Source: Macrostomum lignano (taxonomy: Eukaryota). From it: a stretch of DNA of 64,000 bases. The notes below the pieces were generated by a model, which was not told where the DNA came from, ran no database searches, and was given only the letters and a program-made list of their open reading frames with translations. Below, one piece after another: positions 4,462-64,000 of the stretch; the first letter of the stretch is position 1, and every line of letters starts with the position of its first letter. The position numbers and the translations under genes are program-made. The stretch spans positions 62,001 to 126,000 of the forward strand of contig NIVC01001813.1 in assembly GCA_002269645.1 (NCBI GenBank), written 5' to 3'.

Positions 4462-5918
4462 TCATCGCTTCTTCTCGCCGGAGTCGGGCTTGTCGGAGGA
4501 AGGCGGCTGGTCCTCGGCCGGCTTCTTGCCGTCTGGCGCAGCGGCCGCTGAGGCAGCGGCGGCGGCAGCTTTGGCCCGGGCCGCCTGCAGCTGGTCGGTC
4601 TCTTCTTTCTCTGTCTCCCGGTTCTGCAGCTTGTTGTCGATGAGGTCGTCCAGAGCCAGGATGGAGCGCAGCATGGAGGACAGGTAGATCACCAGGGCCT
4701 GGTCGTTGGTCTGCATGTACAGCGCGCGGACGAACTCCGGCAGGGATATGTCGGGCAGCAGGTTCACCGTGTCCTGCGGGCGGCAGGGGAACAGGGGGGC
4801 ACCGGTGTCTGATGGGAACTCACGGGCGGTGCTCACAAACCGACATCACTCAAATAGCATTTGAAATGGCCGCTTCTACGATTAATGACGCCAGAGTCGA
4901 GGCATACTAAATCAGTCAACTAAAATTTATGACCTTTTGTAGGATGACCCTTCCTAGGACACCTTAATGAGCCTTCCTAGGACACCTTAATGACCCTTCC
5001 TAGGACACCCTAATGCCCCTTCCTAGAAAACCTTTAATGAAATTTCCTAGGACACCCTTAATGACACCAATTTCATGACCTTAGATGACCTCTCTAAAGA
5101 CAGCAAAACATGAATTCATAGAGGCCACTGCCCCAGGCCTCACCTGCAGTCGATAGGCAATCTGGTGATTGATTGGTAGCCGACCGGAGATGACGTCCTC
5201 TAAGTAGGCGTTGATCTCCTTCAGCTGGGCGTGGAAACCGCGCAGGCCGCTGCGCTGCGAGGCGATCCTCTGGGACAGGGTGCCAACCGTGGAGTCTTTG
5301 ATGTCGCGGAGCAGGTGCTCCACGCCGACCTCCTCGGCCTCCTCGGCGCCGATCTCGCTAGCCAGGTGATTCCAAGTCTTCGACGGCGGCCGGCCATCGT
5401 CGTGGACCTCCTCGATGGCCGTGTAGGCCTCGGTTGGCAGGCCCTCGTCTCCTTGATGCTGACGATGACCAGAACGGGGCTGCCGCTGACGCAGAATTTT
5501 CCAATCAGCTCGTTGATGCCGATGTCGTTCTGGCAGAGCCGCGGGCCGCTGTGGTACCAGCCGACGATGCGCTCCTTGGCGTTGACCTTCTTGAACATGC
5601 CGAACATGGTCTCCAGGTAGTCGTGGTCCAGGAACCACACGGACCGGTCGCGCGGGTCCTCCTCGAACGGGATGGCGAAGCTGTTGCTGATGTCCAGTAC
5701 GTCGCCTTGGCGACTGCCAGCAACACGCCGATGCAGCGGCGATGCCCGACGCTGACCTTCTCCAGGCGATTGTAGTGATCCACCACGGACAGCAGCACCA
5801 GCGGGTGGACGATCACCTTCGTGATGGGAGGCGGCCCGGGGTTCAGGGAAGGCGGCAGCGCCTGCGAATCGTCAGCGGCTGCGCCAGCCGCGGCTGTGGC
5901 ATCGGCGGCCTGGGACAT
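4462..5918 (-). CDS. PSMD7: 26S proteasome regulatory subunit Rpn8 (MPN domain); two apparent 1-nt deletions in this sequence
   Basis: Exon 1 5918-5144 ([18 protein letters not shown]...[32 protein letters not shown]...[19 protein letters not shown]), exon 2 4773-4462 ([22 protein letters not shown]). Frameshifts near 5717 and 5449, each repaired by one G. Confidence 0.93.
4944..5065. repeat. ~23-bp degenerate repeat in the PSMD7 intron
   Basis: ATGACCCTTCCTAGGACACCTTA, about 5 copies. Confidence 0.8.
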
Positions 5919-7381: not shown

Positions 7382-10300
7382 CTATTTCCCTTTGACAATA
7401 TCGGCGCTGGTCCGCTGGGCCCGCTTCCTGCGCAGGATGGCGTCCTTGGGCACGGGGCCGATGCGCCGGCCCATCAGCACGGACACCCGCGGCGCGGTCA
7501 GCCGTTTGTGCGCCTGGATGGAGTTGAACTCGCGGCAGACCGGGGCTCGCATCGCGCCCTCGAATTGCTCAGCGTTGGCGTAAGGGAACGGCACGCCTTT
7601 GACCAGATGGCGGCGCAGCGCCTGGCCTGCGCCCAGCCGCTCCCGGATGATCACGTGACCGTGGGCTGCGTCCCGGCGCTGCCGGCGAGGCGCCTTGATG
7701 ACGAATTTCTGGCGGCGCTCCTCGGACACTGGCCGGGTGCCGGGGCCTGTCCAGGTGTTCCAGCCGGGCAGGAACAGGTCCACGTCTTTTGGCTGCTCCT
7801 GGAATCGAGTGGGGTGGACTGGAATGGACTCGGCTGGATTGCTTTGAGCAGCTTTGGGCAGTAGCTATGAGCAGAGTAGCTTTGAGCAGAGTAGCTTTGA
7901 GCAGAGTTGCTATGAGCAGAGTAGCTTTGAGCAGAGTAGCTTTGAGCAGAGTAGCTATGAGCAGAGTAGCTTTGAGCAGAGTTTCTATGAGCAGAGTAGC
8001 TTTGAGCAGAGTTTCTATGAGCAGAGTAGCTATGAGCAGAGTAGCTATGAGCAGAGTAGCTTTGAGCAGAGTTTCTATGAGCAGAGTAGCTTTGAGCAGA
8101 GTAGCTATGAGCAGAGTAGCTTTGAGCAGAGTTTCTATGAGCAGAGTAGCTTTGAGCAGAGTAGCTATGAGCAGAGTAGCTATGAGCAGAGTAGCTTTGA
8201 GCAGAGTTTCTATGAGCAGAGTAGCTTTGAGCAGAGTAGCTATGAGCAGAGTAGCTTTGAGCAGAGTAGCTTTGAGCAGAGTAGCTATGAGCAGAGTAGC
8301 TATGAGCAGAGTAGCTTTGAGCAGAGTTTCTATGAGCAGAGTAGCTATGAGCAGAGTAGCTATGAGCAGAGTAGCTATGAGCAGAGTAGCTTTGAGCAGA
8401 GTTTCTATGAGCAGGGTAGCTATGAGCAGAGTAGCTATGAGCAGAGTAGCTTTGAGCAGAGTTTCTATGAGCAGAGTAAGCTATGAGCAGAGTAGCTATG
8501 AGCAGAGTAGCTATGAGCAAAGTAGCTATGAGCAGAGTAGCTTTGAGCAGAGTTTCTATGAGCAGAGTAGCTATGAGCAGAGTAGCTATGAGCAGAGTAG
8601 CTTTGAGCAGAGTTTCTATGAGCAGAGTAGCTATGAGCAGAGTAGCTATGAGCAGAGTAGCTTTGAGCAGAGTAGCTTTGAGCAGAGTTTCTATGAGCAG
8701 AGTAGCTATGAGCAGAGTAGCGGGGTTACAGCGATCGCACCTCGTCAGCCACGGCGGCCTTCTCCCGCTCAAAGTCGGCCTTGGCGTCGGCTTCGGTCTC
8801 GGCCACCTCCTCGGCCAGCAGTTCGTCGGTGCGCAGGCGGGCCAAGCTCCGCCTGGACGAGGCGGCCTCCAGGGCGTCGCCGTCTTCGTCTCCGGCGGCG
8901 TCGACGGTTGGCAGAGAGGGCATGTGGCTGAGGTCGAGTTCCAGACTGCGCTGCTGCTGCTGCCGCTTCTGTCCGGCTGATGAGGCAAGAGTTGATGAGG
9001 CCGCGCTGAGTCTGGAGGGGAAGCGTCAATATGATAGACAGTCAAACAGAAGAATAAAAGCTCAATATATAATTATCCGCTGTCTATTGTCCCATCTACT
9101 CCATACCATCCTATCTAATCAATACCCTGCCATCAACTCCCTACTCTCCCATTCACTCCCTACTGTCCCATCTACTCCCTACTGTCCCATCTACTCCCTA
9201 CTGTCCCATCTACTCCCTACTGTCCAATCTACTCCCTACTGTCCCATCTACCCCCTACTGTCCCATCTACTCCATACCTCCCATCTACTCCATACCCTCC
9301 CATCTACTCCCTACTCTCCCATCTACTCCCTACTGTCTCATCTACTCCCTACTGTCCCATCTACTCCATACCTCCCATCTACTCCATACCCTCCCATCTA
9401 CTCCCTACTCTCCCATCTACTCCCTACTGTCCCATCTACTCCCTACTGTCCCATCTACTCCCTACTGTCCCATCTACTCCATACCTCCCATCTACTCCAT
9501 ACCCTCCCATCTACTCCCTACTCTCCCATCTACTCCCTACTGTCCCATCTACTCCCTACTGTCCCATCTACTCCCTACTGTCCAATCTACTCCCTACTGT
9601 CCCATCTACCCCCTACTGTCCCATCTACTCCATACCTCCCATCTACTCCATACCCTCCCATCTACTCCCTACTCTCCATCTACTCCCTACTGTCTCATCT
9701 ACTCCCTACTGTCCCATCTACTCCATACCTCCCATCTACTCCATACCCTCCCATCTACTCCCTACTCTCCCATCTACTCCCTACTGTCCCATCTACTCCC
9801 TACTGTCCCATCTACTCCCTACTGTCCCATCTACTCCATACCTCCCATCTACTCCATACCCTCCCATCTACTCCCTACTCTCCCATCTACTCCCTACTGT
9901 CCCATCTACTCCCTACTGTCCCATCTACTCCCTACTGTCTCATCTACTCCCTACTGTCCCATCTACTCCCTACTGTCCCATCTACTCCCTACTGTCCCAT
10001 CTACTCCATACCTCCCATCTACTCCATACCCTCCCATCTACTCCCTACTCTCCCATCTACTCCCTACTGTCCCATCTACTCCATACCTCCCATCTACTCC
10101 ATACCCTCCCATCTACTCCCTACTCTCCCATCTACTCCCTACTGTCCCATCTACTCCCTACTGTCCCATCTACTCCCTACTGTCCCATCTACTTCCTACT
10201 GTCCCATCTACTCCCTACTGTCCCATCTACTCCCTACTGTCCCATCTACTCCCTACTGTCCCATCTACTCCCTACTGTCCCATCTACTCCATACCTCCCA

Positions 10301-12135
10301 TCTACTCCATACCCTCCCATCTACTCCCTACTCTCCCATCTACTCCCTACTGTCCCATCTACTCCCTACTGTCCCATCTACTCCCTATTGTCCCATCTAC
10401 TCCCTACTGTCCCATCTACTCCCTACTCTCCCATTCACTCCCTACTGTCGAATCTACTCCCTACTCTCCCATTCACTCCCTACTGTCCAATCTAATCCCT
10501 ACTGTCCCATCTACTCCCTACTGTCCCATCTACTCCCTGCTCTCTCTACCTACTCCCTACTCTCCCAGCCTACTCACTACTCTCCCCTCTACTCCCACCC
10601 TACCAGCCACTCACCCCGTGGACCTGGCGGGCCGCAGGCTGGCTGGCACAGTCTCGTCCTTGTCCTCCTCCGCGGTGCCGTCATTCCAATCGTCAACAAG
10701 ATCCTCGGGAAGCTGGACGGCGGCCTCATCGCCGCTAGATTTGGCATCGCTATCCTCGCCGCTGCTGTCGCCATTGGCATCGCCGTCGGTCTTCTCGGTG
10801 AGCTCCTTGCCCCGCTGGATCATGTCCTGCACCGCCTGCCTGGCCGCGTCGTCAAACTTGGCCCGCAACTTCTGCTGCCTGGCGAACTTGCTGCCGCCCC
10901 GGTGCCGCTGGCTGATCCGCTCGTCTGCGCGCGCCCGCTCCAGCGCCGCCATGCGCTCGGCGAACGCGGCCGGGTCCGAGTCCTTCAGAGCGGTCAGCTC
11001 GGCCTCCTCCTGCTTGAGCTTGGCCCGGCGAGCGTGCTTCCTGTAGGATTTGGATTTAATCCGCGACTGGCGCTTCAGCTTCTCTTCTAAGAAATGGCGC
11101 CGAGCTATTAGGCGCCGGTTCGAGGCCAGGCGCTCGCGAACTTTGGCGCCATCGAGCTGATTTGGGTTTTTCTGCTGCTGCTGCGGATTCCCGGCGGCCA
11201 GGCCGGCAGCCTCGGCGATGGCCGTCTGGTTGTACAGCCGGCGGTACAGCCGACTCTCGAGGTCGTCGACGACTGGCGCCGACGTCGTTGGAGCAGCGCC
11301 AGATTCGCCTTTGGCGCTGTCAGGATCGGCGCTCATTGCAACGGCGATGTCGACGCGGGCCCGCTGGCGATAGTCGGAGACGGACTGCGGCCGCGGGGCG
11401 CCGGTGGCGGGCAGCGGGAAGCTCACCTCCTCAGACAGGCGATTCCGCTCGACGTAGCCATACCAGCGGCCGAGGTCCTGGGAGGTCACACGCAAATCTT
11501 GGTAAGGAGCTTTGGCGCTGGGCGCACCAATCTTGGAGGGACTTAGAGGGCGATTCTCAATGGGGAAGAAGGCGATTCTTAATGGGAGAAGAGGGCGATT
11601 CTCAATAGGAGGGGGAGATTCTCAATGGGAGGAGATTCTAAATTGGAGAAGAGGGCCATTCTCAATGAGGGTAGAGTCTAGTAGGCGAGTTTCAAGTGCC
11701 GCCTCGAACGGCTAATGCAATTCTCAAAGATCCGAGCCTCACCTTATTCGCTCTCTCATATGCCGCGATCCGCTGCGACTTGGCCTCCGTCAGCTTCGCT
11801 GGCGCCTCCAGCACCCGGTGCCGCCGTTTGGCCGCCCGCAGCTCCTGGCCGACCGCCCGTTTAGCGGCCTTGCCGCCCAGCGCCGTGGCCAGAATCTGCC
11901 GCATCGAGGACGCCGCGCCACCGGCCGAGCGCAGTCCGTGGACGTCCATGGCCGATGACGGAGGTCGGCGCTCCGAACGTCGGCGTCCATCCACTTTGAG
12001 GGTGCGGCGCAGGCCGCTCAGCAGGGCCGCGTGATCCTCCTCTGGTGCATCCGCACTGGCCTCTTCTCCGGCAGACATTGTTGCTTCTGCTTCTTCTTCT
12101 AGAGGGTCATCGTCGCTGTCTTCACGATTTTTCAT
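7382..12135 (-). CDS. UTP14: U3 snoRNA-associated protein 14
   Basis: Exons 12135-11743, 11477-10615, 9011-8741, 7798-7382 with consistent phases (0,2,0). Motifs DLGRW...RNRLSEEVSFPL, SRIKSKSYRK, ERISQRHRGGSKFA, PKDVDLFLPGWNTWTG, VPFPYANAEQFE match UTP14. Start ATG inferred. Confidence 0.88.
7862..8720. repeat. 15-bp minisatellite (GAGCAGAGTAGCTAT/TTT) in UTP14 intron 3
   Basis: More than 50 tandem copies; source of the spurious SRVAM/EQSSY ORFs. Confidence 0.96.
9150..10560. repeat. ~19-bp C-rich minisatellite (CTACTCCCTACTGTCCCAT) in UTP14 intron 2
   Basis: Long tandem array with higher-order variants; source of the 769-aa spurious ORF. Confidence 0.96.
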
Positions 12136-21054: not shown

Positions 21055-22050
21055 TCGAGAGTGAAACTCGCTTCCAGACTCTTCCGAGAGTGAAACTTTG
21101 CTTCCAGACTCTTCCGAGAGTGAAACTTTGCTTCCAGACTCTTCCGAGAGTGAAACTTTGCTTCCAGACACTTCCGAGAGTGAAACTCGCTTCCAGACTC
21201 TTCCGAGAGTGAAACTTTGCTTCCAGACTCTTCCGAGAGTGAAACTTTACTTCCAGACTCTTCCGAGAGTGAAAATTTACTTCCAGACTCTTCCGATAGT
21301 GAAACTTTGCTTCCAGACTCTTCCGAGAGTGAAACTTTGCTTCCAGACTCTTCCGAGAGTGAAACTTCGCTTCCAGACTCTTCCGAGAGTGAAACTTTAC
21401 TTCCAGACTCTTCCGAGGGTGAAAATTTACTTCCAGACTCTTCCGAGAGTGAAACTTTGCTTCCAGACTCTTCCGAGAGTGAAACTTTGCTTCCAGACTC
21501 TTCCGAGAGTGAAACTTCGCTTCCAGACTCTTCCGAGAGTGAAACTTTACTTCCAGACTCTTCCGAGAGTGAAACTTCGCTTCCAGACTCTTCCGAGAGT
21601 GAAACTTTACTTCCAGACTCTTCCGAGAGTGAAACTTCGCTTCCAGACTCTTCCGAGAGTGAAACTTCGCTTCCAGACTCTTCCGAGAGTGAAACTTCGC
21701 TTCCAGACTCTTCCGAGAGTGAAACTCGCTTCCAGACTCTTCCGAGAGTGAAACTTTGCTTCCAGACTCTTCCGAGAGTGAAACTCGCTTTCAGACTCTT
21801 CCGAGAGTGAAACTCGCTTCCAGACTCTTCCGAGGGTGAAACTCGCTTCCAGACTCTTCCGAGAGTGAAAATTTACTTTCAGACTCTTCCGAGAGTGAAA
21901 CTTCGCTTCCACACACTTCCGAGAGTGAAAATTTACTTCCAGACTCTTCCGAGAGTGAAACTTCGCTTCCAGACTCTTCCGAGAGTAAAAATTTACTTCC
22001 AGACTCTTCCGAGAGTGAAACTTTGCTTCCAGACTCTTCTGAAAGTGAAA
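21055..22050. repeat. 30-bp minisatellite (TTCCGAGAGTGAAACTTTGCTTCCAGACTC) with some 29-bp units
   Basis: About 33 copies between a candidate donor (~20992) and acceptor (~22186), so probably in a 5'UTR intron. Confidence 0.93.
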
Positions 22051-22229
22051 AAATTGCAAGAAGACTCCTCCATCAGTGAAACTTACCTTCCAGAATCTTC
22101 CAAGAGTGAAGAGACACTTTCAGACTTTTCCAAGAGTGATTCTTCCAGCGTGAAACCTCAGTTGTAGAGGCAATTTCACAATTTTAGGAACTGTCAGAGC
22201 AGCGGAGCTCGGATTGCCGCAACAGCGAA

Positions 22230-35546
<13,317 letters not shown>

Positions 35547-39293: not shown

Positions 39294-39864
39294 AGACTGT
39301 GGAGGAGAGGACTGACGCAAAGTCTCATAGGTGTAGCTGATTAGCCTGACTTCAGGACCAGCATAATGACGCTCAAGATTTCAGATTAAATATCGACGTG
39401 ACTCCATTTTCTGATATCGGCGCTTTAACTACGAGCGTATTATCCGAATTCATTTTAACTATCAATGATTTGAACAAAATAATCTACGGCGAGTCACTCC
39501 AGCATAGTCGTATTAGAAGATCGACTTTACTACAATGGAGAAAGCATATTTTCATTTATTCACCAACTAGTAACGAAATAAACATCTGATTTTACTTCGA
39601 TGCGTCGCTCGAACATTTTCCGGCTTTGAAAAAAAACTTGCATTCAAAATTGCATTCAGTAGAAGTTGTGTTTTACCCTTAACTGGAAATTAAACTTGGA
39701 TAAAAAATTTTGGGAATTGAACTGACTAGATTTTAGAATCACGTGACTTTTTGCTTTAACAACCTCAGATATAACAAAACGAGTAGTATACTATTAGAAA
39801 CATATCACAGAAAACAGCAACGCAATCGTATAAAAACAGCATCGTCACAAGTAGAGACAAAACA

Positions 39865-40920
39865 GCATGACAGCATAGAAAACAGCATGACAGTATAGAA
39901 AACAGCATGACAGTATAGAAAACAGCATGACAGTATAGAAAACAGCATGACAGTATATAAAACAGCATGACAGTATAGAAAACAGCATGACAGTATAGAA
40001 AACAGCATGACAGTATAGAAAACAGCATGACAGTATAGAAAACAGCATGACAGCATAGAAAACAGCATGACAGTATAGAAAACAGCATGACAGCATAGAA
40101 AACAGCATGACAGTATAGAAAACAGCATGACAGTATAGAAAACAGCATGACAGCATAGAAAACAGCATGACAGTATAGAAAACAGCATGACAGTATAGAA
40201 AACAGCATGACAGTATAGAAAACAGCATGACAGTATAGAAAACAGCATGACAGTATAGAAAACAGCATGACAGTATAGAAAACAGCATGACAGTATAGAA
40301 AACTGCATGACAGTATAGAAAACAGCATGACAGTATAGAAAACAGCATGACAGTATAGAAAACAGCATGACAGTATAGAAAACAGCATGACAGTATAGAA
40401 AACAGCATGACAGTATAGAAAACAGCATGACAGTATAGAAAACAGCATGACAGTATAGAAAACAGCATGACAGTATAGAAAACAGCATGACAGTATAGAA
40501 AACAGCATGACAGTATAGAAAACAGCATGACAGTATAGAAAACAGCATGACAGTATAGAAAACAGCATGACAGTATAGAAAACAGCATGACAGTATAGAA
40601 AACAGCATGACAGTATAGAAAACAGCATGACAGTATAGAAAACAGCATGACAGTATAGAAAACAGCATGACAGTAAAGAAAACAGCATGACAGTATAGAA
40701 AACAGCATGACAGTATAGAAAACTGCATGACAGTATAGAAAACTGCATGACAGTATAGAAAACAGCATGACAGTATAGAAAACAGCATGACAGTAAAGAA
40801 AACAGCATGACAGTATAGAAAACTGCATGACAGTATAGAAAACAGCATGACAGTATAGAAAACAGCATGACAGTATAGAAAACAGCATGACAGTATAGAA
40901 AACAGCATGACAGTAAAGAA
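39865..40920. repeat. 20-bp minisatellite (AACAGCATGACAGTATAGAA)
   Basis: About 52 highly homogeneous copies. Confidence 0.97.
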
Positions 40921-41445
40921 AGCAACATGAAAATAATTGCGACAAAGGAAGCCAATCAGGTAAAAAACAGTGTCAAGCAGCTTGTTCCAGCATACTCCAT
41001 CAGCATGTGCTTTTAGTTTTGGGCCTCGTGCCATGCTCTGAAGCACGGCTCAAGGCACAAGCTTGGCTGCCCGTTGCAAGCAGCGCAGAGAAAGACAGTT
41101 CGCTTCTGCAGGCCAGCATTGCAAATTCGACAGTGCTTTGTTGGGTGTCGCTGTGTGGTAGTTGCTGGCAAGCGCGTTGGTGCTGCTGCTGCTGCTGCTG
41201 CTGCAGGAGCCTTCCACCTCGCAAGCGCCCAACGCCGGTATCGCAGACTGAAATTCGCTGACATACTTCTAAAAAAAAGTGCAAGAACGTGCGGGAACCG
41301 CCAATGTGCTTATAGGCTATAAAGGAGTTGCGAACAAATTGCAGCAAGAGATAGGAGGCCAGCTTGAAAAACTACTTCTGTGTTCTTCTACTTGTCTTGT
41401 AGGGCTCACAACTCAATCCTGTCCACTCCTCCCATGCTTTGGTTG

Positions 41446-45281: not shown

Positions 45282-47922
45282 ATGGCCCGGTTCTCTCTGC
45301 TTTCAGTGATTCTCCTGCACCTGGTTGTTGTCTCCATGCAGCAGGGCGACGATGAGACTCTCGGTGAGTTGCCGTTGTCCGGCCTTCTGTGTAACTTGTG
45401 CTCTGGGCTATCGCAATCTTCACACGACCTGGCGTATTTTTATTTCATGAGGTCAAGAAGCTAAAGTTAAATCTAGTTTAAGCTTAATTTTGGCCTCTAG
45501 TAATGCTTTTAATCAGATCGACTAACTCGTGAAATCCCCCTGTAAAGCGCATAACTAACTTATAATGCTCAGGTGGGTATTGAGAAGTCAAGCAGTGGCT
45601 AATAGAGACAGTGAGAAGCCATATCTTAAACCACTGCAGCGCTGCAAAATCTTCAGACAACATTTTAAGCTACTAGCAGGTAATACGAGCGCATAAAACA
45701 TGCACGTTGCTGAACCCCCCGCAATCCGCAGACATTCGACAGAGGCTCTGCAGCATCTCGGTGTCGATGATCAACGACCAGATCGAAAGAGAGTTCAGCG
45801 CCATGTACCTCTATGAGACAATGGTAAGTCTTTTCTCTGATCCCACGCATTGCCAAGGTCTCCACCCAACCACCTTATTTCGTGCTAAACTCTGCAGAGT
45901 GTCTTACTCAGGGAGTACGAGCGTATTTTTCTATCAATAATTTTGTTAAAACAAACTCTTAGCCCTCGTGTGAAACTCTATCCGTTGAACCCCGGTTTTA
46001 ACCTCAGTTTCATTCAATCCGAATTCCTAGCTTAAATTGAAAACGCAAGTTCGCCGACCGCCACGCCCGCAGGCCAACTACTTCGGCGGGCCCAGCGTCG
46101 GTCTTCCCTGCATCGAGAATTTTTTCAAGAAGGCCGCCGACAAGCAGCGAGAGCGCGCGCACAAACTGATCGACTACCTCATCATGCGGGGCGGCCACGT
46201 CAAGCTGAAGCTGATTATTGTGAGTGCTTGTTCACCAAGCCACTTCACACCTGGTCACCTAACACCTGGTCACCTAACACCTGGTCACCTAACACCTGGT
46301 CACCTAACACCTGGTCACCTAACACCTGGTCACCTAACACCTGGTAACCTAACACCTGGTAACCTAACATCTTGTCAACAACACCTGGTCACCTGATCCC
46401 CTGGTCACCTTATCCCCTGGTCACCTTATCCCTGGTCACCTTATCCCTGGTCACCTGATCCCTGGTCACCTGATCCCTGGTCATCTGATCCCTGGTCACC
46501 TTATCCCTGGTCACCTGATCCCTGGTCACCTGATCCCTGGTCATCTGATCCCTGGTCACCTTATCCCCTGGTCACCTTATCCCTGGTCACCTTATCCCTG
46601 GTCACCTGATCCCTGGTCACCTGATCCCTGGTCATCTGATCCCTGGTCACCTGATCTTCTGGTCACCTGATCCCCTAGTCACCTGATCTTCTGGTCACCT
46701 GATCCCCTGGTCACCTGATCCCTGGTCATCTGATCCCTGGTCACCTGATCTCCTGGTCACCTGATCCCTGGTCACCTGATCCCTTGTCACCTGATCTCCT
46801 GGTCATCTGATCCCTGGACACCTGATCTCCTGGTCACCTGATCCCCTGGTCACCTGATCCCTGGACACCTGATCTCCTGGTCACCTGATCTCCTGGTCAT
46901 CTGATCCCTGGACACCTGATCTCCTGGTCACCTGATCCCCTGTTCACCTGATCCCTGGTCATCTGATCCCTGGACACCTGATCTCCTGGTCACCTGATCC
47001 CCTGTTCACCTGATCCCTGGTCATCTGATCCCTGGACACCTGATCTCCTGGTCACCTGATCCCCTGGTCACCTGATACCCTGGTAACCTGATCCACTGAT
47101 CACCTGATCCCTGGTCACTTGATCCTCTGATCCCAGTTCCCGGTTATTAGAACAGTTTGATATTTATTTTTCAAACTACAGCTTAAAGCTTCAATGTAGC
47201 CCCATAAACGTATCTTTGTTGCAGCCTCCTGGCAAGTTGGACTGGTCCTCCGCCCTTGCTGCAGCCAAGATGGCTCTTGACGTCGAGAGGAACATCACAC
47301 AGGAGTTGTACAGACTGCGAGATCGGGCCGTCGACATGGGGAGCGACCCGCATGTAAGCCTTACTGTAGATGGCCGCTCTGATTGGGTACTGAACTAGCC
47401 TGTCAAATATTGAGTGCATTCCTGTCAAATCGATAAATTCATTCTCATGTATTTGGGGCCTTCTTGGCTTCACGCATAGTTCTAATGCCAACAAAACACC
47501 AGCCAAAATGCTACGCTGTGAGGCACCTCGCTGATTGGCTGGCTGGCTCAGCCCCAGCTGACTCACCCCCAACCTCCGCCCGAACTCCCTACCACCAGCC
47601 AGCCAATCATCAGCGTCAGTATTTTTTCAAGAGACTATTATCCATATACTAAAATATACTAAAAATTCTATCTAAGTCTTCCATTTGCTACAAAAATGCT
47701 CACCTTCAGCTTAACAGAAAATAACTGTATATGTCTCTATGTCTACGTGCACTCTACAAAATTGATACTCGAGTCTTGAAATTTCAGCTGGTGGGCTTCA
47801 TCGAGTCCGAGTTCCTGACCGAGCAGGTGACGGGCATCCGGGATCTGCGGAAACTCATTGCTCGCCTGTCTAGGGCTGGCAGCGGCCTTGGCGGGCTCAT
47901 TGTGGATAAGGAGCTCAACTAG
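45282..47922 (+). CDS. Secreted ferritin copy 2 (ferroxidase ligands substituted; exon-2 acceptor altered, possibly a pseudogene)
   Basis: Exons 45282-45363, ~45690-45823, 46073-46219, 47225-47353, 47788-47922. Helix B reads KAADKQRERAHKL. The CATAG|CC acceptor of the other copies is missing. Confidence 0.75.
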
Positions 47923-53684: not shown

Positions 53685-54965
53685 ACGCAGACAACAACAG
53701 CAACAAACAACAAAATACGCTGTCAGGATGGCAAAAGTCAGCGTCACAGGGCGCGCTTCATGGCTTGGGCGCGAACAAAAGCCGCGCCACCGGCAGTGTC
53801 CGGGGCGCCGGCGTCAGCCAGCAGACAGTCAACGTAACGCCGAGTTCGCGCTTGACCTCGACGGTAGGGTGCCTGCAGCGTGAGTAGCAGCACCTCCTGC
53901 ACCGGCTGTTGGCAGTACGACTTGGCGCGGATGAGATGGCCTGCGAGCTGGAGTCGCCGACGGCGCAGTAGATCGCTTGGACGTGGCAGGCCAGCGCGGC
54001 GATAGAGTGCCGCGTTGTTGACTCGCTCGACGCCGATGTTGAAGGCGGCGCGCAGCAGGCCAGCGTGCGCCGCATCGACTTGCTGTTCGAGTGAGTCCGT
54101 CAGCGTCCAGGTCTCGGCGTTGTAGAGCAGGACGGTCTCGATTACCGCCTGGAACAGCGCCGCCCTCTTGCGGTCCGGTAGGGCCTCGGACTGCAGGACT
54201 GCCCTCACAGAACGAAAGGCAGCCCAGGCAAGCCCGCGGCGGCGTCGCAGGTCCTCGCGAGCGTCTGGAACCAGACCGCCGAGGTAGACGAACTGCTGAC
54301 ATCGCGGGAGCTCGGTCGCCTGCCCGTCAGCGCCTCGGCAGAAAATTTCAGCCTCGATGTCGTCCGGCACGCAGAGCACAACGGTCTTCTGCGTGTTGAC
54401 CACCAGGCCGACGCTCGCTGCAACGGCAACTAACCTGTCCAGCTGCCGTTGGGCGCCCTCGACGGTCGAGGACAGCAGGGCGTGGTCGTCGGCGTAGCCA
54501 AGCACGCTGAGCCGCTTCTCCGGTTGACGTCGACCCACGCGTCGCCGCAGCAGAAAGCCGTCGTCGTCGGTAGGAAGAGCAGTCCGCAGCACCCAGTCAA
54601 GCACCAGGACGAACAGGAACGGCGCCAGCATATCTCCCTGAAGCACTCCGGAGGAGGTCTCAAAGGAGTCCTATAGGCCGTCCGGTGTTGTCACAGCAGC
54701 TGTCGTATCACGGTACATCGCCATGATGGCGGAGATCAGCTGCTCAGGCACGTTGTACGCGCGGAGCACCATTGGAAGCACGGCTCTGACAACCGAGTCG
54801 AATGCCTTCTTGAAATCGATAAAGATTAGAATCAGGATCAAAGCCTGAGGCGCGCAGAGCAGGTGCAGAGCATTCGTTCCGTTCGCGAAGCTGGGTGTTG
54901 ACCAGGGGGTTCATGAGAATCGCCTGCAGACGAATTGCCCGCCGAGATTTGCCCGCAGGAGATTT
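53685..54965 (-). mobile_element. RTE-clade LINE, 5'-truncated RT/3' fragment
   Basis: FIDFKKAFDSV, GVLQGDMLAPFLF, LGYADD, GLVVNTQKT, FVYLG, VLLYNAETWTLT, RRRRLQLAGHLIR; (TTG)n-like tail. Confidence 0.9.
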
Positions 54966-57384: not shown

Positions 57385-58372
57385 TGAGGGATGTCCAAAA
57401 AGTAGTGATACTTTTAACCGTAGCTCTCATTCTATAGCTTCCTGTGATTAAAAATTTTATGAACTGATAGCAGCAAATCTCTTCTACAGACTAATTTTTG
57501 AATTTAAAAAATTGATACTAGAGAACAAAAGTTATACCCATGAAAGTAACAGTACCTGCACTAGAGAGTTACACAAATTATAGGCTGAGATTCACGAGAT
57601 CCATGCCAAGTAAGCTTCAATGAATTGTTGATTTTGGCTTGTCCAACCTGTTAGCAATCTCTCTAATGGTCATTTGGGAGTCCTCATCAAGAAGATCCAG
57701 AATGGAGTCCACTAGTATATAAGGTCAATAAATCTATGGCCATCCCATCCGATGCTGATCTGCCAAGTCAGTCCTTCCCTTGTTGAACTGCTCAATCCAT
57801 TGATAAACTGTCATTTTGCTAACCACAGAGGATCCATGTGCAGAGCAAAGTTTAGTGTGAATTTCTGAGGCACTATGGCCAGCGCCCCAAAGAGTGAAGA
57901 TGGTACTTTGCTAAGCAACAACTGAGTGCACATCCATGTGTTGTTGTTGAGTATGGGCAATGATGAATGAATCGCAAAATGCAAGCTACTCTGTTTGCAA
58001 ATAAAGTAATGAATTTAATGCTTTATATTTCTGCATATGATTCCATCCATAGACAAATTTCAGTCAGTCACAGTGAGCATCATTTTGCAATTGGGCTTTG
58101 ATATTGCTTAAACAAGACATTTATTGATGCCTACTTAATGAATGAGTGCAGAAGTTGACTATTATAAATCTCAATATAATTTGTGTAACTCTATGGTACA
58201 GGTACTGTTACTTTCATGGGTATAACTTTTGTTCTCTAGTATCAATTTTAAAAATTCAAAAAGCAGTCTGTAGAAAAGATTTGCCGCTATCAGTTCATAA
58301 AATTTTAAATCATAGGAAGCTATAGAACAAGAGCTACAGTTAAAAGTATCACTACTTTTTGGACACCCCTCG
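57385..58372 (-). mobile_element. Internally deleted mariner element with ~175-bp TIRs
   Basis: TA-flanked; TIR (C/T)GAGGG(G/A)TGTCCAAAAAGTAGTGATAC...; internal relic SASEIHTKLCSAHGSSVVSKMTVYQWIEQFNKGRTDLADQHRMGWP (mariner N-terminal HTH). Confidence 0.87.
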
Positions 58373-58836
58373 TATAAGCCTGTTAAATATTAAGAAATGG
58401 GGATAAAGATATAAAGTAAAGTAGAGAGCTGCCCAATAGCTTCTAATTATTACTTTTGTTAAAATGCTATATAGCTATAAGGATATTGGTTTCTTTGAAA
58501 CTATGCTATAAGACCTAGGGCCTATTGAGAAAAATTTTTTTAGAAAAGAGATATAATATGCAACAATGTCCAGGGGATAGGGGGTGTATCCCCCCCCTCT
58601 TAAAGAGCCTGACCAAAACTTTTTTGTTGCCCTTTGTTGCTATACATGCTACCATGTGACTCTGTCATAGCACTTTGACCTTGGTGTATCCCCCCATAGG
58701 AAAGTTTGCCAGGTTGCCCCTGCCTCTAATAACAAATGCAATTATCTGTGAGCAAGCTAACACCCCGTGCACATTACTTGATTGCATGCATTAGCATTAT
58801 CTCTGCCAATAGAGCTCACTCTGTACACTTGAAGCC

Positions 58837-61021
58837 ATGCTCAACCGCTGTCGCCTTGTCGCCGCCACCGCTGCTCGCCTCGGCTGCCGTCGGGGCCTGT
58901 CATCTGGCGGAGCTCCGCCGCCACCCCGGCCCTCCCGCCTGCTGCTGGCTGCCGCTGTCGGCACCGCCGCTGCCGCCGCCACCGTCGCTTTTGTTGATCA
59001 GCGCCGGCGCCTTGCCGCCCTGCCCGGAGGCGCCCTGACCGCCGTCACCGCCGCTGCCGCCTCGGACAATGTCCAGCCAACTGTCTACAGCGAGACCAAG
59101 GACCACGCGCTGTACCTCACCATCCATTTGGACCCTCGCGCCGATAAGCGGGAGGTGCTTCGCGTTGCTGCCAATCTGCAGAAGCTGGTGGACAAGGTGG
59201 GTAAAGATCTTGGGTGCATTCTTTTGATGTGCCGCCGCATTGAAGTTCTTAGTCCATCACAGTCCTTTGATGTGCCGCCGCTCTCAAATTCATCACAATT
59301 CTTTGATGTGCCGCCTGATGTGCCGCCGATCTCAAGTCCATCACAAAGTCCTTTGATGTGCCGCCGCTCTCAAGTCCATCACAGAGCCCTTTGATGTGCC
59401 GCCTCTCTCAAGTCCATCACAGAGCCCTTTGATGTGCCGCCTCTCTCAAGTCCATCACAGAGCCCTTTGATGTGCCACCGCTCTTGTCTTAACCTTCTTT
59501 CACACCCCCACCCATCCCAGGTGTGCCCACCGGATCTGCGGGACGAATCTGACGAGACCTGGGCGGGCGTGGGCTTCGGCTACAGCTTCTACCGGGCCGC
59601 TGTCGGCCAGTCGGGCAGCGCCGCCTCCGTGGACTTCAGCTATCCGCACAGGCGCGGGGCTCTGGGCGAACTGCCGAGCACTGGCGGCGATTTGTTCATC
59701 CACGCCAAGTCTAACCAGGTGCGTTTCTCTGCTGTCACTGGGACAGAAATCACCAGATAATTCATTTGTGTGGATTTATAAAGTCCTTGTTGCACTTTTA
59801 GCTAAGCAGACACTGTATTCCACTAGGGAGCCAGTGAGAGTGGCCATTGGGGATGAAAATGGTACAGTTAATTTCTATCTCGGCTGCACCCAGGTGAGCA
59901 AGCTGTTTGAGCTGTGCCAAGCCGTGACGGCCGCCATGCCCAAGGGCTCGGTCCGCTCATTCGAGGACATCTACAGCTTCGTGTACCGGAACGGGCGCGA
60001 CCTTAGCGGCTTCATCGACGGCACGGAGAACGCGGCTGACGAGGAGAGTCGCAAGCAGATCGCTGTGGCCCGGGGCGGCGGCAGCTTCGTCATCACGCAG
60101 CGCTGGATTCACGACCTGGCCAAGATCCGGGACTCCAAGCCGGCCGAGCTGGAAAGCTTCGTTGGCCGGGACATCACGGACAGCACCGAGCTGCGGCGCA
60201 AGTCCATCTCCTCTCACGTGGCCAGGATGACTGGGGGCAACGCCTTCGAGCAGAAGAAGCAGTTCGAGATTGTGCGCCAATCCATGCCTTATGGGTGAGG
60301 ATTGACGGCCATGCTTGGACCCGCTTCTCAGGGCGATTCCCGATTGGTGTCAGGGTGATTCCTGATTAGTGTCAGGGCGATTCCCGATTGGTGTCAGGGT
60401 GATTCCCGATTAGTGTCAGGGCGATTCCCGATTAGTGTCAGGGTGATTCCCGATTAGTGTCAGGGCGATTCCCGATTGGTGTCAGGGCGATTCCCGATTG
60501 GTGTCAGGGCGATTCCCGATTGGTGTCAGGATGATTCCCGATTGGTGTCAGGGCGATTCCCGATTGGTGTCAGGATGATTCCCGATTGGTGTCAGGGCGA
60601 TTCCCGATTGGTGTCAGGGTGATTCCCGATTGGTGTCAGGGCGATTCCCGATGGGTGTCAGGATGATTCCCGATTAGTGTCAGGGCGATTCCCGATTGGT
60701 GTCAGGGTGATTCCCGATTAGTGTCAGGATGATTCCCAATTGGTGTCAGGGCGATTCCCCATTGTTGTCCGGCCGATTCCCTATTCTCAGTCGCACCTGC
60801 AATCGCCAAGCCGCTCCCCAACCCCCAGCACGGTGTCCGGCGAGTCCGGTCTGTTCTTCATCGCCTACGCGGCCAGCCCGGACAACTTCAACTTCATGCT
60901 GGACCGCATGGTCGGCAAGGGCAGCGACTCGCACTCCGACGACATCATGCGGATCACCCGCTGCGTGGCTGGCAACTACTGGTACTTCCCGCCCACCTCT
61001 GAGCTGGCCAAGTTCGCCTGA
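58837..61021 (+). CDS. Dye-decolourising (DyP/YfeX-type) haem peroxidase with predicted mitochondrial presequence, 383 aa
   Basis: Exons 58837-59196, 59521-59718, 59894-60294, 60829-61021 (phases 0,0,2). DyP motifs STGGDLFIH, DLSGFIDGTEN, SFVITQRWIHDL, SHV (proximal His), IVRQSMPYG (distal Arg), GLFFIAY, GNYWYFP. Confidence 0.9.
59225..59480. repeat. 38-bp degenerate repeat in DyP intron 1
   Basis: TTTGATGTGCCGCCGCTCTCAAGTCCATCACAGAGCCC, about 6-7 copies. Confidence 0.88.
60330..60760. repeat. 22-bp minisatellite (GATTGGTGTCAGGGCGATTCCC) in DyP intron 3
   Basis: About 19 tandem copies. Confidence 0.94.
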
Positions 61022-61054
61022 GTGAGCTGGGCGAGGCTGCAACCTGATACTGGA

Positions 61055-61135
61055 TAGAGATAGAGAGAGATAGAGAGATAGATACATAGATACATAGACA
61101 CATAGATAGATACATAGATAGATAGATGATAGATG
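61055..61135. repeat. (GATA)n-like microsatellite in the DyP 3' region
   Basis: Read directly. Confidence 0.85.
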
Positions 61136-64000
61136 ACCTTGCCACACCAAGGTCATCAGAGAGAAATGCCCGCACTTGGTTGCTCCTCTGCTAACGAATA
61201 GTTTCTATCAACAAAAAAAACTATGAATTAGTTTGCTGATTGAAAAAAAAACATTTCTGGGAATAGATTATTATATTTATTCTTAAATATTCACACACTT
61301 GTAATCGTTGCGACATTCTATTGACACTGTGTCTGCTTGCTCTTATTCATCCAGCTATAACGTACTCTCTGTACTTTATACTGCAGTGCCGCAGCGAATC
61401 GAAACGGTAAAAAAAGAATAGGATCCTCTGTCTTCCTTCAGCTCTGCGCTGCACTGGGTTTTTATAGTTTTATTAGTAATCTGATTCCGCATCTGATCTC
61501 TATTTTTTGCTATAATACTTTTCCAAATGACTAGTTTGTTATAATAGTAACAGTTCCGGTGTTAATGATTGTTATAGCTATCTTAAAGACGAGGCACGTC
61601 GATTTCGTTTTTCATCTTGTTCTTCGATTTTGTTGCGTAGGTTTTCTATAGGAATAAATCAATTGTGCTCTTTCTAAAGACTTCACATTCGCTTCTCTGA
61701 ACGTATTAGAAACATTAAAGCTGAGATATTGTTGTTTTTTTCTTTCAGTTTGCTTGGCTTTCTTGCTAACTCGAGTGTTGAGTATTATCTTATTGGTGCC
61801 TGAATTGGTGCCGGTGCCGCGGTGCGTCACTGGCCAAGCCTGGTAGATCTCTCTCTACATTTCCTTTCCTAGGTCATTATCATTGCAAGCTTATCATAGT
61901 TGCAGCGTGACAGCGTTGAAACTTGACTGTGTAGTTGCCTGTGCATTACCTGTGTATTGCTGCTGTGCATTGAACGATTACAGATCCGAGAATTTTCTCA
62001 GTCTGTGTAAATGATATCTGCAGGTTTCTTTTATATGAGCTAGTGTGTGCAGCGTTCCTTGTTTTATGCCTGCACATGAACAATCTAAGCCCAGTAAAAA
62101 GTTCTGTGTACATGTAGTGCAGGGGCCCCGAATACAGAACTGTTTAGAAATATTGAAAATATCTGACACTCCTGACAGCTTTATGTTCTACAAAAGTTGA
62201 TGCAGCATGTACCAAATATCAAAGATGAGTATTTTGCGAGTCGTAGTATAAAAAACGTGAGATGCATATGTACATGTACGAGCTATTTTTGTGACAAACG
62301 AATAAACGAACCGCATCGTGGAACGTACAAATTAAATTCCTATATTTATCAATTTAAATGACCCATCAAATGCAAATGTACATGTAATGTCATACTGTAT
62401 GTTTATTATGACTGTGCAAATAAGAAAAAACTCATTGAACTAAACAGGCGCGAATCCAGAAATTTTTGGGGGGAGGTAGCTACCAAGCACCACAACCCAA
62501 ATATAAGATATTACACTGTACATGTATAATGAGACCTGGCCAGTTGCAGCCAAAAAAGTATGTGTGGCCTAATTTTTTTTGGCCGCGGCTGACGGGGGGC
62601 CATGGCTCCCTTTCTGGATCCGCTCCTGGAACTAAACATGTACATATGTAATTGCATGCTTATAGTGCCTCTCCCCGGTTCCCCCGAGAGCAACGCTGAG
62701 CTGGCGGCCCGGATCGACCCGCGTGTGCATGCACCCCTGGGTCGCACTTTACAGAGGCGACGGCAGCAGGTGTTGACGCCACTGCCTGCGGTCCCCATGC
62801 ACACATGAGGCACTGGGCCCCCGCTCGCCGACCTGCTGCTCAGCCCCGCCTTGTGGGAGAATCCGCCGAGGCCAGGGCGCTGCACCATGCCTCTGGACTG
62901 ACACTCCTCACTGACTTGCAGGCTCTAGTAGCCGCGCCTTACCCCTCAGTCTGCAGCTAGGCTGGACTCAGATGTTTTCCACCAGCGGGTGCTTCGCTCA
63001 CCCCTGCACCAGCGTCTGTTTAATAATAATTTTGAAAAAGAATAAAAATGCTTACAGAGCTCTCGTTTTTTAAAGATGATAATCATTTACGCTAGAAATG
63101 AAGCTAGATATCTCGGAAATTAGTGTAGCCACTTAATAACGGCCATTAAATTGTATGCAGAAAGTTCTGCTAAAAGTTAATCAGTAAAAACTTAAACTCT
63201 CTTATATAAATTAACTTGTTTTAAATAGTAAATAGCGAAATTTTAATTTTCGCTTTTTTGTCCTCGATCGTCGATCGACAACTATAGACATAGTGACGTT
63301 CAAGTGATAATGTCTAAATTGACTTCATCGCCCTTTTAGTCATTAGAAAGTTGAGTTGAGTTTTAATAAAAAAAATATATTAGATACCGAATAGTTCATT
63401 GATCATGAACAAGTCAACTTGAATAGACAAATTCATTTGACATTTCATAACGTAAAAGTAAAGTACGTAACTTAACGTAAGCGACGCGTGTAACAGTAAC
63501 ACGACAGGCAGAAATAGACTGACGCTATTAATATTGCGTTAGGTTAGCTAGATCTAGCACTAATCTAATTATTCATGTGGCTGGAATGGGAAACTGGAAA
63601 CAAGTCACTGGAAATGGGCCTAAAGTCGTAAAGATTTAGGGTCTACTATCTTTCCCTATAATAGGCCTATGACACTGTTGATAACTCAAATGATCAGTTG
63701 ATAAATTTATTCTATTTGGCAATGGCTACAGTTATTCTGTTCTGGCACTACCAATACCAATAAATACAAAATAGCTAAAGCTAATGACAATGTAGGACGT
63801 AGGTTTGAAATTGAATTTCCAATAATTTGAACAGTATACAACATATTGTATTAATAAGTTAAAGATGTACACACAATCCAATTGAAACACTGGATGGATG
63901 GCTTCCATGCCCATACATACAAGCTTTCTATTTTATTTATCAAACAAAATAATACAATTTTATTAGTAGGCCTAACAAAAATAAAGAATTTATTACTAAA

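Follow-up and report, generated by a model that had tools for sequence, protein, structure and literature searches.

DyP-type peroxidases have been noted in invertebrates since 2009, and the family was described as expanded in schistosomes and absent from vertebrates (Fitzpatrick et al., 2009). In the cestode Echinococcus multilocularis, the enzyme EmDyp (EmuJ_001133900) was cloned, expressed and found to bind haem, and the recombinant protein showed peroxidase activity with diaminobenzidine (DAB) and luminol as well as catalase activity (Ulrich and Brehm, bioRxiv 10.1101/2022.11.07.515413). The same study reported induction of EmDyp in aerobic growth, cestode genomes without catalase, and two 5' splice isoforms, one of which carries an N-terminal hydrophobic helix. 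Here we analyse a gene of this family at positions 58837-61021, on the plus strand, of a 64,000-nucleotide stretch of the Macrostomum lignano genome (assembly GCA_002269645.1, contig NIVC01001813.1, positions 62,001 to 126,000), referred to below as the window. We hold with moderate confidence that its product is a class B/P DyP belonging to an old, eukaryote-wide clade with N-terminal extensions, which would be imported into mitochondria with its catalytic domain facing the intermembrane space.

The gene itself is ordinary, an annotated member of a known family: its product is identical, at 100% over 100% of the length, to UniProt entry A0A1I8HSY2 of the free-living flatworm M. lignano, which already bears the name Dyp-type peroxidase. 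An earlier reading of the same DNA (the original prediction) had known of no functional characterisation of such proteins, a statement made outdated by the haem binding and the peroxidase and catalase activities of EmDyp. What is new is only the proposed localisation, which is backed by conservation across eukaryotes and would contradict the interpretation of EmDyp as a secreted enzyme.

Both flatworm proteins belong to the same animal DyP clade and share a domain of ~300 aa with all catalytic residues, and a cestode sequence related to EmDyp (P0121) has a shortened version of the N-terminal module described below. Cestode sequences are far more divergent, at ~43% identity. Whereas EmDyp is made in a long and a short form through alternative 5' splicing, Macrostomum has lost the intron between module and domain, and both are fused in exon 1. 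The N-terminus of EmDyp was interpreted by its authors as a secretion signal, whereas that of the window protein is read here as a putative mitochondrial presequence.

The bacterial class B/P enzymes KpDyP of Klebsiella (PDB 6fks), YfeX of Escherichia coli (5gt2) and VcDyP of Vibrio cholerae (5de0) have the same fold and the same ~300-aa domain, with the Asp of the GxxDG motif, the proximal His and the distal Arg aligned to those of the window protein. They are ~31-36% identical to it, cytoplasmic, and lack its N-terminal module of 79 residues. The solved eukaryotic class B enzyme DyPA of Dictyostelium discoideum (7o9j) is a recognisable match (E 3.9e-30), but with 28% identity and a template modelling (TM) score of 0.79-0.80 it is weaker than the enterobacterial enzymes and thus not the closest relative on those scores. 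DyPA has ~95 chain residues ahead of the position matching query residue 171, which leaves no room for an extension of 80 residues; the amoebozoan sequence that does carry the module is that of Echinamoeba (P0274).

For the N-terminus, the comparison is with proteins of the intermembrane space and is one of analogy only. In Ccp1, cytochrome b2 and Smac/DIABLO, a hydrophobic sorting segment comes after the presequence, and maturation takes two proteolytic steps; the sorting segment of Ccp1 is rich in Ala, as is that of the window protein. Yeast Ccp1 also resembles the role proposed here in being a haem peroxidase that removes H2O2, but its fold and superfamily (the peroxidase-catalase superfamily) are unrelated and no sequence homology is claimed. 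The stop-transfer route to the intermembrane space uses bipartite signals, and PARL or Pcp1 cleaves inside Gly/Ala-rich segments (reviewed in PMC8061763).

Gene model and assignment to class B/P

When positions 58300-61600 of the window were read, four open stretches could be connected across GT..AG boundaries into a spliced coding sequence of 1152 nt, which encodes 383 amino acids followed by TGA (Table 1). An in-frame stop lies upstream of the ATG at a distance of eight codons. Aligned with orthologues from five other phyla, the product is colinear and free of gaps at the splice junctions. A transcript contig of a close relative (L007, from SRR28338164; 1487 nt) aligns in four blocks whose ends are the four exon ends, and it encodes a protein (P0002) that is 89% identical to the window protein. 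The positions given in the original prediction for the gene and for the Asp, His and Arg codons (60017, 60215 and 60275) were exact, and its claim of an intron-containing animal gene is borne out by the three GT..AG introns, which match the spliced transcript of the relative.

Positions 1-22 of this transcript (CGAAGACTCAATTTATTGCATG) are the last 22 nt of the published 35-nt spliced leader of M. lignano. Since the 5' end of the transcript coincides with the 3' end of the leader, the orthologue is trans-spliced to a spliced leader in the close relative. A trans-splice acceptor site was not located in the window, where the 5' untranslated region does not align with that of the transcript.

The superfamily profiles for DyP-type peroxidases (Pfam PF04261/PF20628 and TIGR01413) were matched above their cutoffs: Dyp_perox_C at 2.4e-30 (105.9 bits, cutoff 20), and TIGR01413 at 6.6e-40 (137.4 bits, cutoff 100.5) over the full profile (1-323). 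The best solved relatives are all class B/P enzymes, i.e., KpDyP (2e-37), E. coli YfeX (1.2e-35) and Vibrio VcDyP (5e-35). In the GxxDG motif of the window protein (G225-F-I-D228-G229), D228 aligns with D143 of KpDyP, and R314 (IVRQS) aligns with R232; D143 and R232 are the positions that carry mutations in entries 6fl2 and 6fkt. The counterpart of H294 (SHVARM) in the alignment is the conserved His in the KpDyP motif SHLSRV, the proximal haem ligand. Asp228, His294 and Arg314 are all intact and invariant among 43 homologues, in agreement with the complete catalytic set that had been recognised earlier.

The predicted structure is consistent with this assignment. An AlphaFold model, for which the homologue alignment served as input, has a predicted local distance difference test (pLDDT) score >90 for residues 80-383 and <60 for residues 1-79. 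Foldseek searches with the model returned DyPs only, with a probability of 1.00 and TM scores of 0.86-0.90 to >40 DyP chains; compared with VcDyP 5de0, KpDyP 6fks and YfeX 5gt2, the target-normalised TM score was 0.88-0.90 at a root-mean-square deviation of 2.5-3.0 Å. Class B/P is set apart from class A by the absence of a Tat signal and from class C/D (V) by missing long insertions, and the domain at residues 80-383 is compact (~300 aa) and without large insertions, as in class B. That the protein is a DyP peroxidase is practically certain, and it is a catalytically complete member of class B/P (YfeX-like). Binding of haem b and H2O2-driven substrate oxidation are predicted for it by analogy with the orthologue EmDyp, for which alone they have been demonstrated.

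Two C-terminal features were considered and dropped. A peroxisomal targeting signal (PTS1) does not fit a protein that ends in AKFA and has orthologues ending in KKLE, KKLR or AKLK, and the C-terminal extension by which some bacterial class B DyPs become encapsulin cargo is missing, as the protein stops a few residues past the last aligned helix.

The N-terminal module and predicted location

Ahead of the catalytic domain, 100 of the 120 homologues that start with Met have the same three-part layout, with a median of 80 residues before the domain. The first part, ~33 residues long, has a median of 7 Lys/Arg and 0 Asp/Glu, and the pooled composition ahead of the hydrophobic segment is 15% Arg, 15% Ser and 0.6% Asp+Glu. 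The second part is a hydrophobic stretch of ~19 residues (23.5% Ala, 19% Gly) with a median Kyte-Doolittle score of 1.3 and a median start at residue 34; in most orthologues, basic residues and Pro stand ahead of this core. The third part is a linker with the motif [VL]-x-A-A-x-x-P-x-x just ahead of QP[ST]V, and in 76 of 82 sequences an AA or AS pair stands among the final 14 residues before the domain. The same layout is present in Echinamoeba, Mucochytrium and MMETSP protist sequences.

All three parts are found in the window protein. Its residues 1-34 contain 7 Arg and no Asp or Glu (5 Arg and again no acidic residue in codons 1-21), RPSR sits immediately ahead of the hydrophobic segment, and the segment itself (residues 35-53, LLLAAAVGTAAAAATVAFV) has a mean Kyte-Doolittle score of 2.17 over 19 residues, which exceeds the usual transmembrane threshold of 1.6. 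The Arg-rich, acid-free N-terminus followed by a hydrophobic stretch, on which the original prediction had based its bipartite presequence, therefore holds up in composition and layout and is kept throughout most of the family.

Cleavage motifs of the mitochondrial processing peptidase (MPP) have an Arg at position -2 or -3, the latter being the R-3 pattern. The motif R-x-Φ-[SA]-[ST] occurs upstream of the hydrophobic stretch in 47 of the 82 full-length homologues, against 9 expected from shuffled sequences (maximum 16 in 200 trials), i.e., a five-fold enrichment of the MPP-like motif. In the window protein it reads R19-G20-L21-S22, and across 35 aligned sequences the conservation of R19 is at least 90%. 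This fits an MPP R-3 site, with predicted cleavage between L21 and S22; a second cleavage near the Ala-Ala motif is possible.

Judged from these features, the N-terminus fits a bipartite intermembrane-space presequence better than a signal peptide for the endoplasmic reticulum (ER). We regard a mitochondrial location as likely, and chances appear evenly divided on whether the intermembrane space is the compartment. We infer that the protein is imported, as well as where it is cut, which part of the mitochondrion it occupies and what its physiological substrate is. The precursor would enter via TOM/TIM23, driven by the Arg-rich, acid-free presequence, and MPP would probably cut after L21. The Ala/Gly-rich residues 35-53 would halt translocation in the inner membrane and leave the domain (residues 80-383) facing the intermembrane space, where a second cut, near the Ala-Ala motif or inside the segment, may free a soluble enzyme of ~33 kDa. 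With His294 as proximal ligand and Asp228 and Arg314 on the distal side, the haem enzyme would reduce H2O2 in this compartment, perhaps with some catalase activity, as in EmDyp.

Sizes observed for related proteins can be compared with this scheme. A spot from two-dimensional electrophoresis of Mytilus gill was identified in the proteomics literature as DyP, with an observed mass of 30.4 kDa and an isoelectric point of 6.0, and a DyP in Dreissena proteomics was found at 27 kDa. Both are nearer to the domain alone (~33 kDa) than to the precursor (~42 kDa), as expected if the whole extension had been cut off or if these were short isoforms. Isoforms shortened by the loss of the module are annotated in Littorina and Tubulanus and also occur in Echinococcus, as would fit a removable targeting module.

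In the reading of Ulrich and Brehm for EmDyp, applied to the window protein, the hydrophobic segment would be an ER signal peptide or a type II signal anchor, and the enzyme would be secreted or exposed at the cell surface to act on external peroxide. For the long isoform, their preprint gives a predicted transmembrane helix at the N-terminus, which it names a signal peptide, and the position of a signal anchor relative to the N-terminus is unrestricted. Secreted DyPs also exist in the clade, since one paralogue (P0126, 327 aa) has, in place of the long module, a classical cleavable ER signal peptide that starts at residue 5 (MSKLTIPCFFTLLVLLTLANC, with cleavage before Q). However, ER signal peptides have a short n-region, as in P0126, an h-region that falls among the opening ~20-25 residues and, 3-7 residues past this, a small-x-small cleavage site. 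The core of the window protein begins at residue 35, after 34 residues with 7 Arg and no acid (family median start 34), and the nearest Ala-rich motif is >18 residues downstream; family-wide, the conserved Ala-Ala motif lies 15-30 residues past the core, beyond the reach of signal peptidase. Furthermore, the Arg- and Ser-rich, almost acid-free composition and the enriched R-x-Φ-S motif are presequence features, the hydrophobicity of the segment (family median 1.3) is low for an ER anchor, and the EmDyp study reports no secretion experiment. A secretory-pathway protein is thus unlikely in our view.

The evidence for a presequence would serve a matrix enzyme just as well, if the presequence drove import and the Ala/Gly-rich segment failed to arrest it. 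In most orthologues the segment is only moderately hydrophobic, again with the median of 1.3, and often has a Pro at its edge. On the other hand, the segment of the window protein, at 2.17, lies above the transmembrane threshold, and the segment with its basic flank is kept from animals to protists despite sequence drift, which is hard to explain without a sorting role. We consider a matrix location improbable.

Several points weigh against import into the intermembrane space. As a measure of an amphipathic helix, the helical hydrophobic moment of residues 1-24 of the window protein is not raised (0.577 compared with 0.584 in shuffles); across the family the median z is 1.2, and 93% of the members lie above zero. 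Since the hydrophobic segment has basic residues both before it (RPSR) and behind it (DQRRR), topology is unreadable from charge. The Mytilus spot of ~30 kDa could equally be a short cytosolic isoform, and the authors of the EmDyp study took the N-terminal hydrophobic helix for a secretion signal. The literature yielded no localisation experiment for any member of the clade and no paper placing a DyP in mitochondria, and searches for a DyP in mitochondrial proteomes or the intermembrane space gave nothing relevant.

Concerning function, the protein is most likely an H2O2-removing haem peroxidase. It might instead act mainly in the haem pathway, oxidising porphyrinogens (coproporphyrinogen, protoporphyrinogen) rather than scavenging peroxide, like E. 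coli YfeX, which was reported as a porphyrinogen oxidase (PMC3215433). YfeX is one of the nearest relatives of known structure (E 1.2e-35; TM 0.88), and a homologue goes by the name "porphyrinogen peroxidase" in one source. CPOX and PPOX, which carry out the oxygen-dependent haem steps, are located at the intermembrane-space side of the inner membrane. However, the family is kept and expanded in schistosomes and kept in cestodes, parasites that are not known to synthesise haem de novo. Its retention and expansion in parasitic flatworms argues for peroxide removal, not haem synthesis, as the conserved role. Moreover, cestodes lack catalase, and EmDyp expression is up under aerobic conditions (Ulrich and Brehm, bioRxiv 10.1101/2022.11.07.515413). 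A predominantly haem-pathway enzyme is quite unlikely, with the proviso that the two functions are not mutually exclusive. Candidate electron donors, by analogy, would be cytochrome c (as for Ccp1, which is pure conjecture) and porphyrinogens (as for YfeX).

Distribution, descent and intron history

Homologues with 50-64% identity to the window protein were found in molluscs, a brachiopod, bryozoans, a nemertean, annelids, trematodes, Priapulus, three hemichordates and Trichoplax, and more distant ones in cestodes, acanthocephalans, Trichinella and Trichuris. At least 10 animal phyla have orthologues, with representatives in Placozoa, many spiralian phyla, Priapulida, clade-I nematodes and Hemichordata. 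Non-animal sequences, 35-48% identical to the window protein, were found in Echinamoeba (Amoebozoa), Naegleria and Willaertia (Heterolobosea), Mucochytrium (stramenopile), Lapot gusevi and marine protists.

The trees were distance-based (neighbour-joining) only, with a "bacterial-like" group that is defined by length and the absence of the N-terminal extension; the bacterial comparators known by name are the PDB matches. In a 70-sequence tree, the eukaryotic N-extended sequences were split from the bacterial-like ones of ~300 aa with 100% bootstrap, and the animals grouped together with Lapot with 86-92%. Usable support was limited to these two groupings and to small clades. Flatworm monophyly received 0% bootstrap, with the parasite sequences on long branches, so the tree is unreliable on the position of Macrostomum within the animals. 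The deep nodes of a 130-sequence neighbour-joining tree had 1-25% bootstrap. Two scans that looked among bacterial and archaeal genomes for the closest relatives known by name gave no matches, as the back-translated patterns were too animal-specific.

Exon structures, mapped exactly for seven species, provide further information on descent. Five to seven intron positions with identical phase are common to Trichoplax, Saccoglossus, Priapulus, Lingula, Aplysia and Schistosoma rodhaini, which represent six phyla. This indicates that the introns were already present in the common ancestor of placozoans and bilaterians. Whereas S. rodhaini keeps five of them, none of the three Macrostomum introns is at an ancestral position. 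All three lie at AG/GT or GG/GT sites, and the minisatellites in intron 1 (38 bp x 4.4) and intron 3 (22 bp x 20.8) occur nowhere else in the window. The mismatch is a feature of gene structure that points to loss and re-gain, not to a protein outside the clade. Complete intron loss followed by new introns suggests that the Macrostomum gene may descend from a retroposed copy with later intron gain.

The family is thus old and eukaryote-wide and not a recent import from bacteria: given the animal-wide orthologues, the shared introns and the N-extended relatives in Amoebozoa, Heterolobosea and a stramenopile, any bacterial origin would predate animals. The possible lateral acquisition suggested in the original prediction is not supported. 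That prediction had named ordinary vertical inheritance together with an already characterised function as what would speak against it, and inheritance indeed proved vertical while function is characterised in part.

Recent horizontal transfer from bacteria into Macrostomum, or bacterial contamination of the assembly, can be dismissed, although bacteria and fungi account for most DyPs, ancestral animal introns are absent from the gene, its GC content at third codon positions (GC3) is above that of its neighbours, and the EmDyp preprint cites a transfer hypothesis for invertebrate DyPs, because identity falls from ~60% with animals to ~40% with protists and ~30% with bacterial-like sequences, the protein nests among animal sequences, and the gene has three spliceosomal introns, an animal-type N-terminal module, animal neighbours and a trans-spliced counterpart in a close relative. 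The neighbours in the window include a long interspersed nuclear element (LINE) and open reading frames for NHL and C-type lectin proteins; together with the spliced leader of the relative's transcript, these animal-type neighbours identify an animal gene rather than contamination. As for base composition, the coding sequence had been described as GC-rich and host-like. It is GC-rich compared with its AT-rich surroundings (flanks 37-39% GC), but its GC3 of 0.84 is more extreme than the 0.59-0.74 of the other domain-matching open reading frames in the window. As far as its accessible text goes, Zamocky et al. (2015), cited in the preprint for transfer into invertebrates, discusses horizontal transfer for fungal DyPs only.

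Some of the homologues deserve separate mention. The EukProt sequence of Lapot gusevi (P0120) nests in the animals beside Trichuris, which may reflect transcriptome contamination. A 917-aa model from Trichinella zimbabwensis (P0122), named Na/phosphate transporter, has a full DyP match at residues 53-353 and is probably a merged model; the same probably applies to a Schistosoma mansoni sequence (P0080) that opens with a second, C-terminal DyP fragment. Cys-rich paralogues of 375-431 aa from molluscs (P0117, P0124, P0125 and P0129, from Aplysia, Plakobranchus and others) have an altered GxxDG motif (FLDNRTN, FYDCRTN), and in P0125 the distal Asp is gone (SGFRMLTN); these are possibly non-peroxidase derivatives. 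In Trichoplax adhaerens (DS985241.1, L003), the annotated DyP model of 298 aa is partial and misses the 5' end. An unannotated open stretch upstream, at ~4315-4509 of L003 and ending at a GT at 4510, encodes module-type sequence (ARRLPVIIGTAVGLCAGGLLYEYNRRK, followed further on by AATTENHQNS) and would join VISLTKEH in phase 0 at a conserved intron position; the first (Met) exon of this gene was not found in L003.

Locus features and biological meaning

Table 1. Coordinates in the window of the parts of the Macrostomum lignano DyP gene.
Feature	Position	Strand	Description
Exon 1	58837-59196	+	Codons 1-120; putative targeting module and start of the catalytic domain
Codons 1-21, MLNRCRLVAATAARLGCRRGL	58837-58899	+	Putative matrix-targeting presequence; predicted MPP R-3 site R19-G-L/S22
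Codons 22-34, SSGGAPPPPRPSR	58900-58938	+	Basic, Pro-rich spacer abutting the hydrophobic segment (read directly from the sequence)
Codons 35-53, LLLAAAVGTAAAAATVAFV	58939-58995	+	Ala/Gly-rich hydrophobic segment; putative stop-transfer/sorting segment or membrane anchor
Codons 54-79	58996-59073	+	Linker ending in AAAASDNV, the local form of [VL]-x-A-A-x-x-P-x-x; possible second processing site
Codons 80-120	59074-59196	+	DyP catalytic domain begins (QPTVYSETKDH...); TIGR01413 match at residues 80-379
Intron 1	59197-59520	+	324 nt, phase 0, GT..AG; lineage-specific position; mostly a 38-bp minisatellite (59268-59484)
Exon 2	59521-59718	+	Codons 121-186
Intron 2	59719-59893	+	175 nt, phase 0, GT..AG; lineage-specific position
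Exon 3	59894-60294	+	Codons 187-320, last codon split; holds the catalytic set
Asp228 codon	60017-60019	+	Catalytic residue, exon 3
His294 codon	60215-60217	+	Catalytic residue, exon 3
Arg314 codon	60275-60277	+	Catalytic residue, exon 3
Intron 3	60295-60828	+	534 nt, phase 2, GT..AG; lineage-specific position; 86% is a 22-bp minisatellite of 20.8 copies (60328-60785)
Exon 4	60829-61021	+	Codons 320-383 and TGA (61019-61021); protein ends ...AKFA, without C-terminal extension or SKL-type ending

Downstream of the gene, a (GATA)n microsatellite of ~21 copies (61053-61134) begins 32 nt past the stop codon, and the earliest AATAAA is at 61653. Elsewhere in the window, the region 27873-33492 holds a non-LTR retrotransposon on the minus strand, with an APE endonuclease open reading frame (31461-33032) and another for reverse transcriptase and RNase H (29036-31399). 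One and the same 17-bp minisatellite forms an array on either side of the element (27873-28891 and 33007-33492), which looks as though it had inserted into that array, and another reverse transcriptase fragment is present at 53744-54646. The window contains >20 long minisatellite arrays with periods of 12-43 bp and up to 80 copies, for example at 1-459, 7860-8721, 9084-10596, 21056-22110, 39859-40930 and 46250-47125. These arrays explain the blocks with extreme GC or AT skew and most of the long apparent open reading frames (e.g., 8781-11090 and 39805-41046).

A broader view that joins the proposals on location, function and descent is tentative and, taken as a whole, doubtful. The DyP found from amoebae to hemichordates would be an H2O2-removing peroxidase of the intermembrane space, sorted by a Ccp1-like bipartite signal and possibly fed by cytochrome c, and so a counterpart of fungal cytochrome c peroxidase that was lost by vertebrates and arthropods. 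The Macrostomum copy would stem from a retroposed, intron-less copy that gained three introns at AG/GT sites, two of them filled with minisatellites.

If the proposed location is correct, many invertebrates, including schistosomes and tapeworms, would have a mitochondrial haem peroxidase without a vertebrate counterpart. This would bear on how such animals handle peroxide from the respiratory chain, and also on the suggestion that the enzyme could serve as a drug target. Since M. lignano is amenable to transgenics, the localisation hypothesis is testable in the animal itself.

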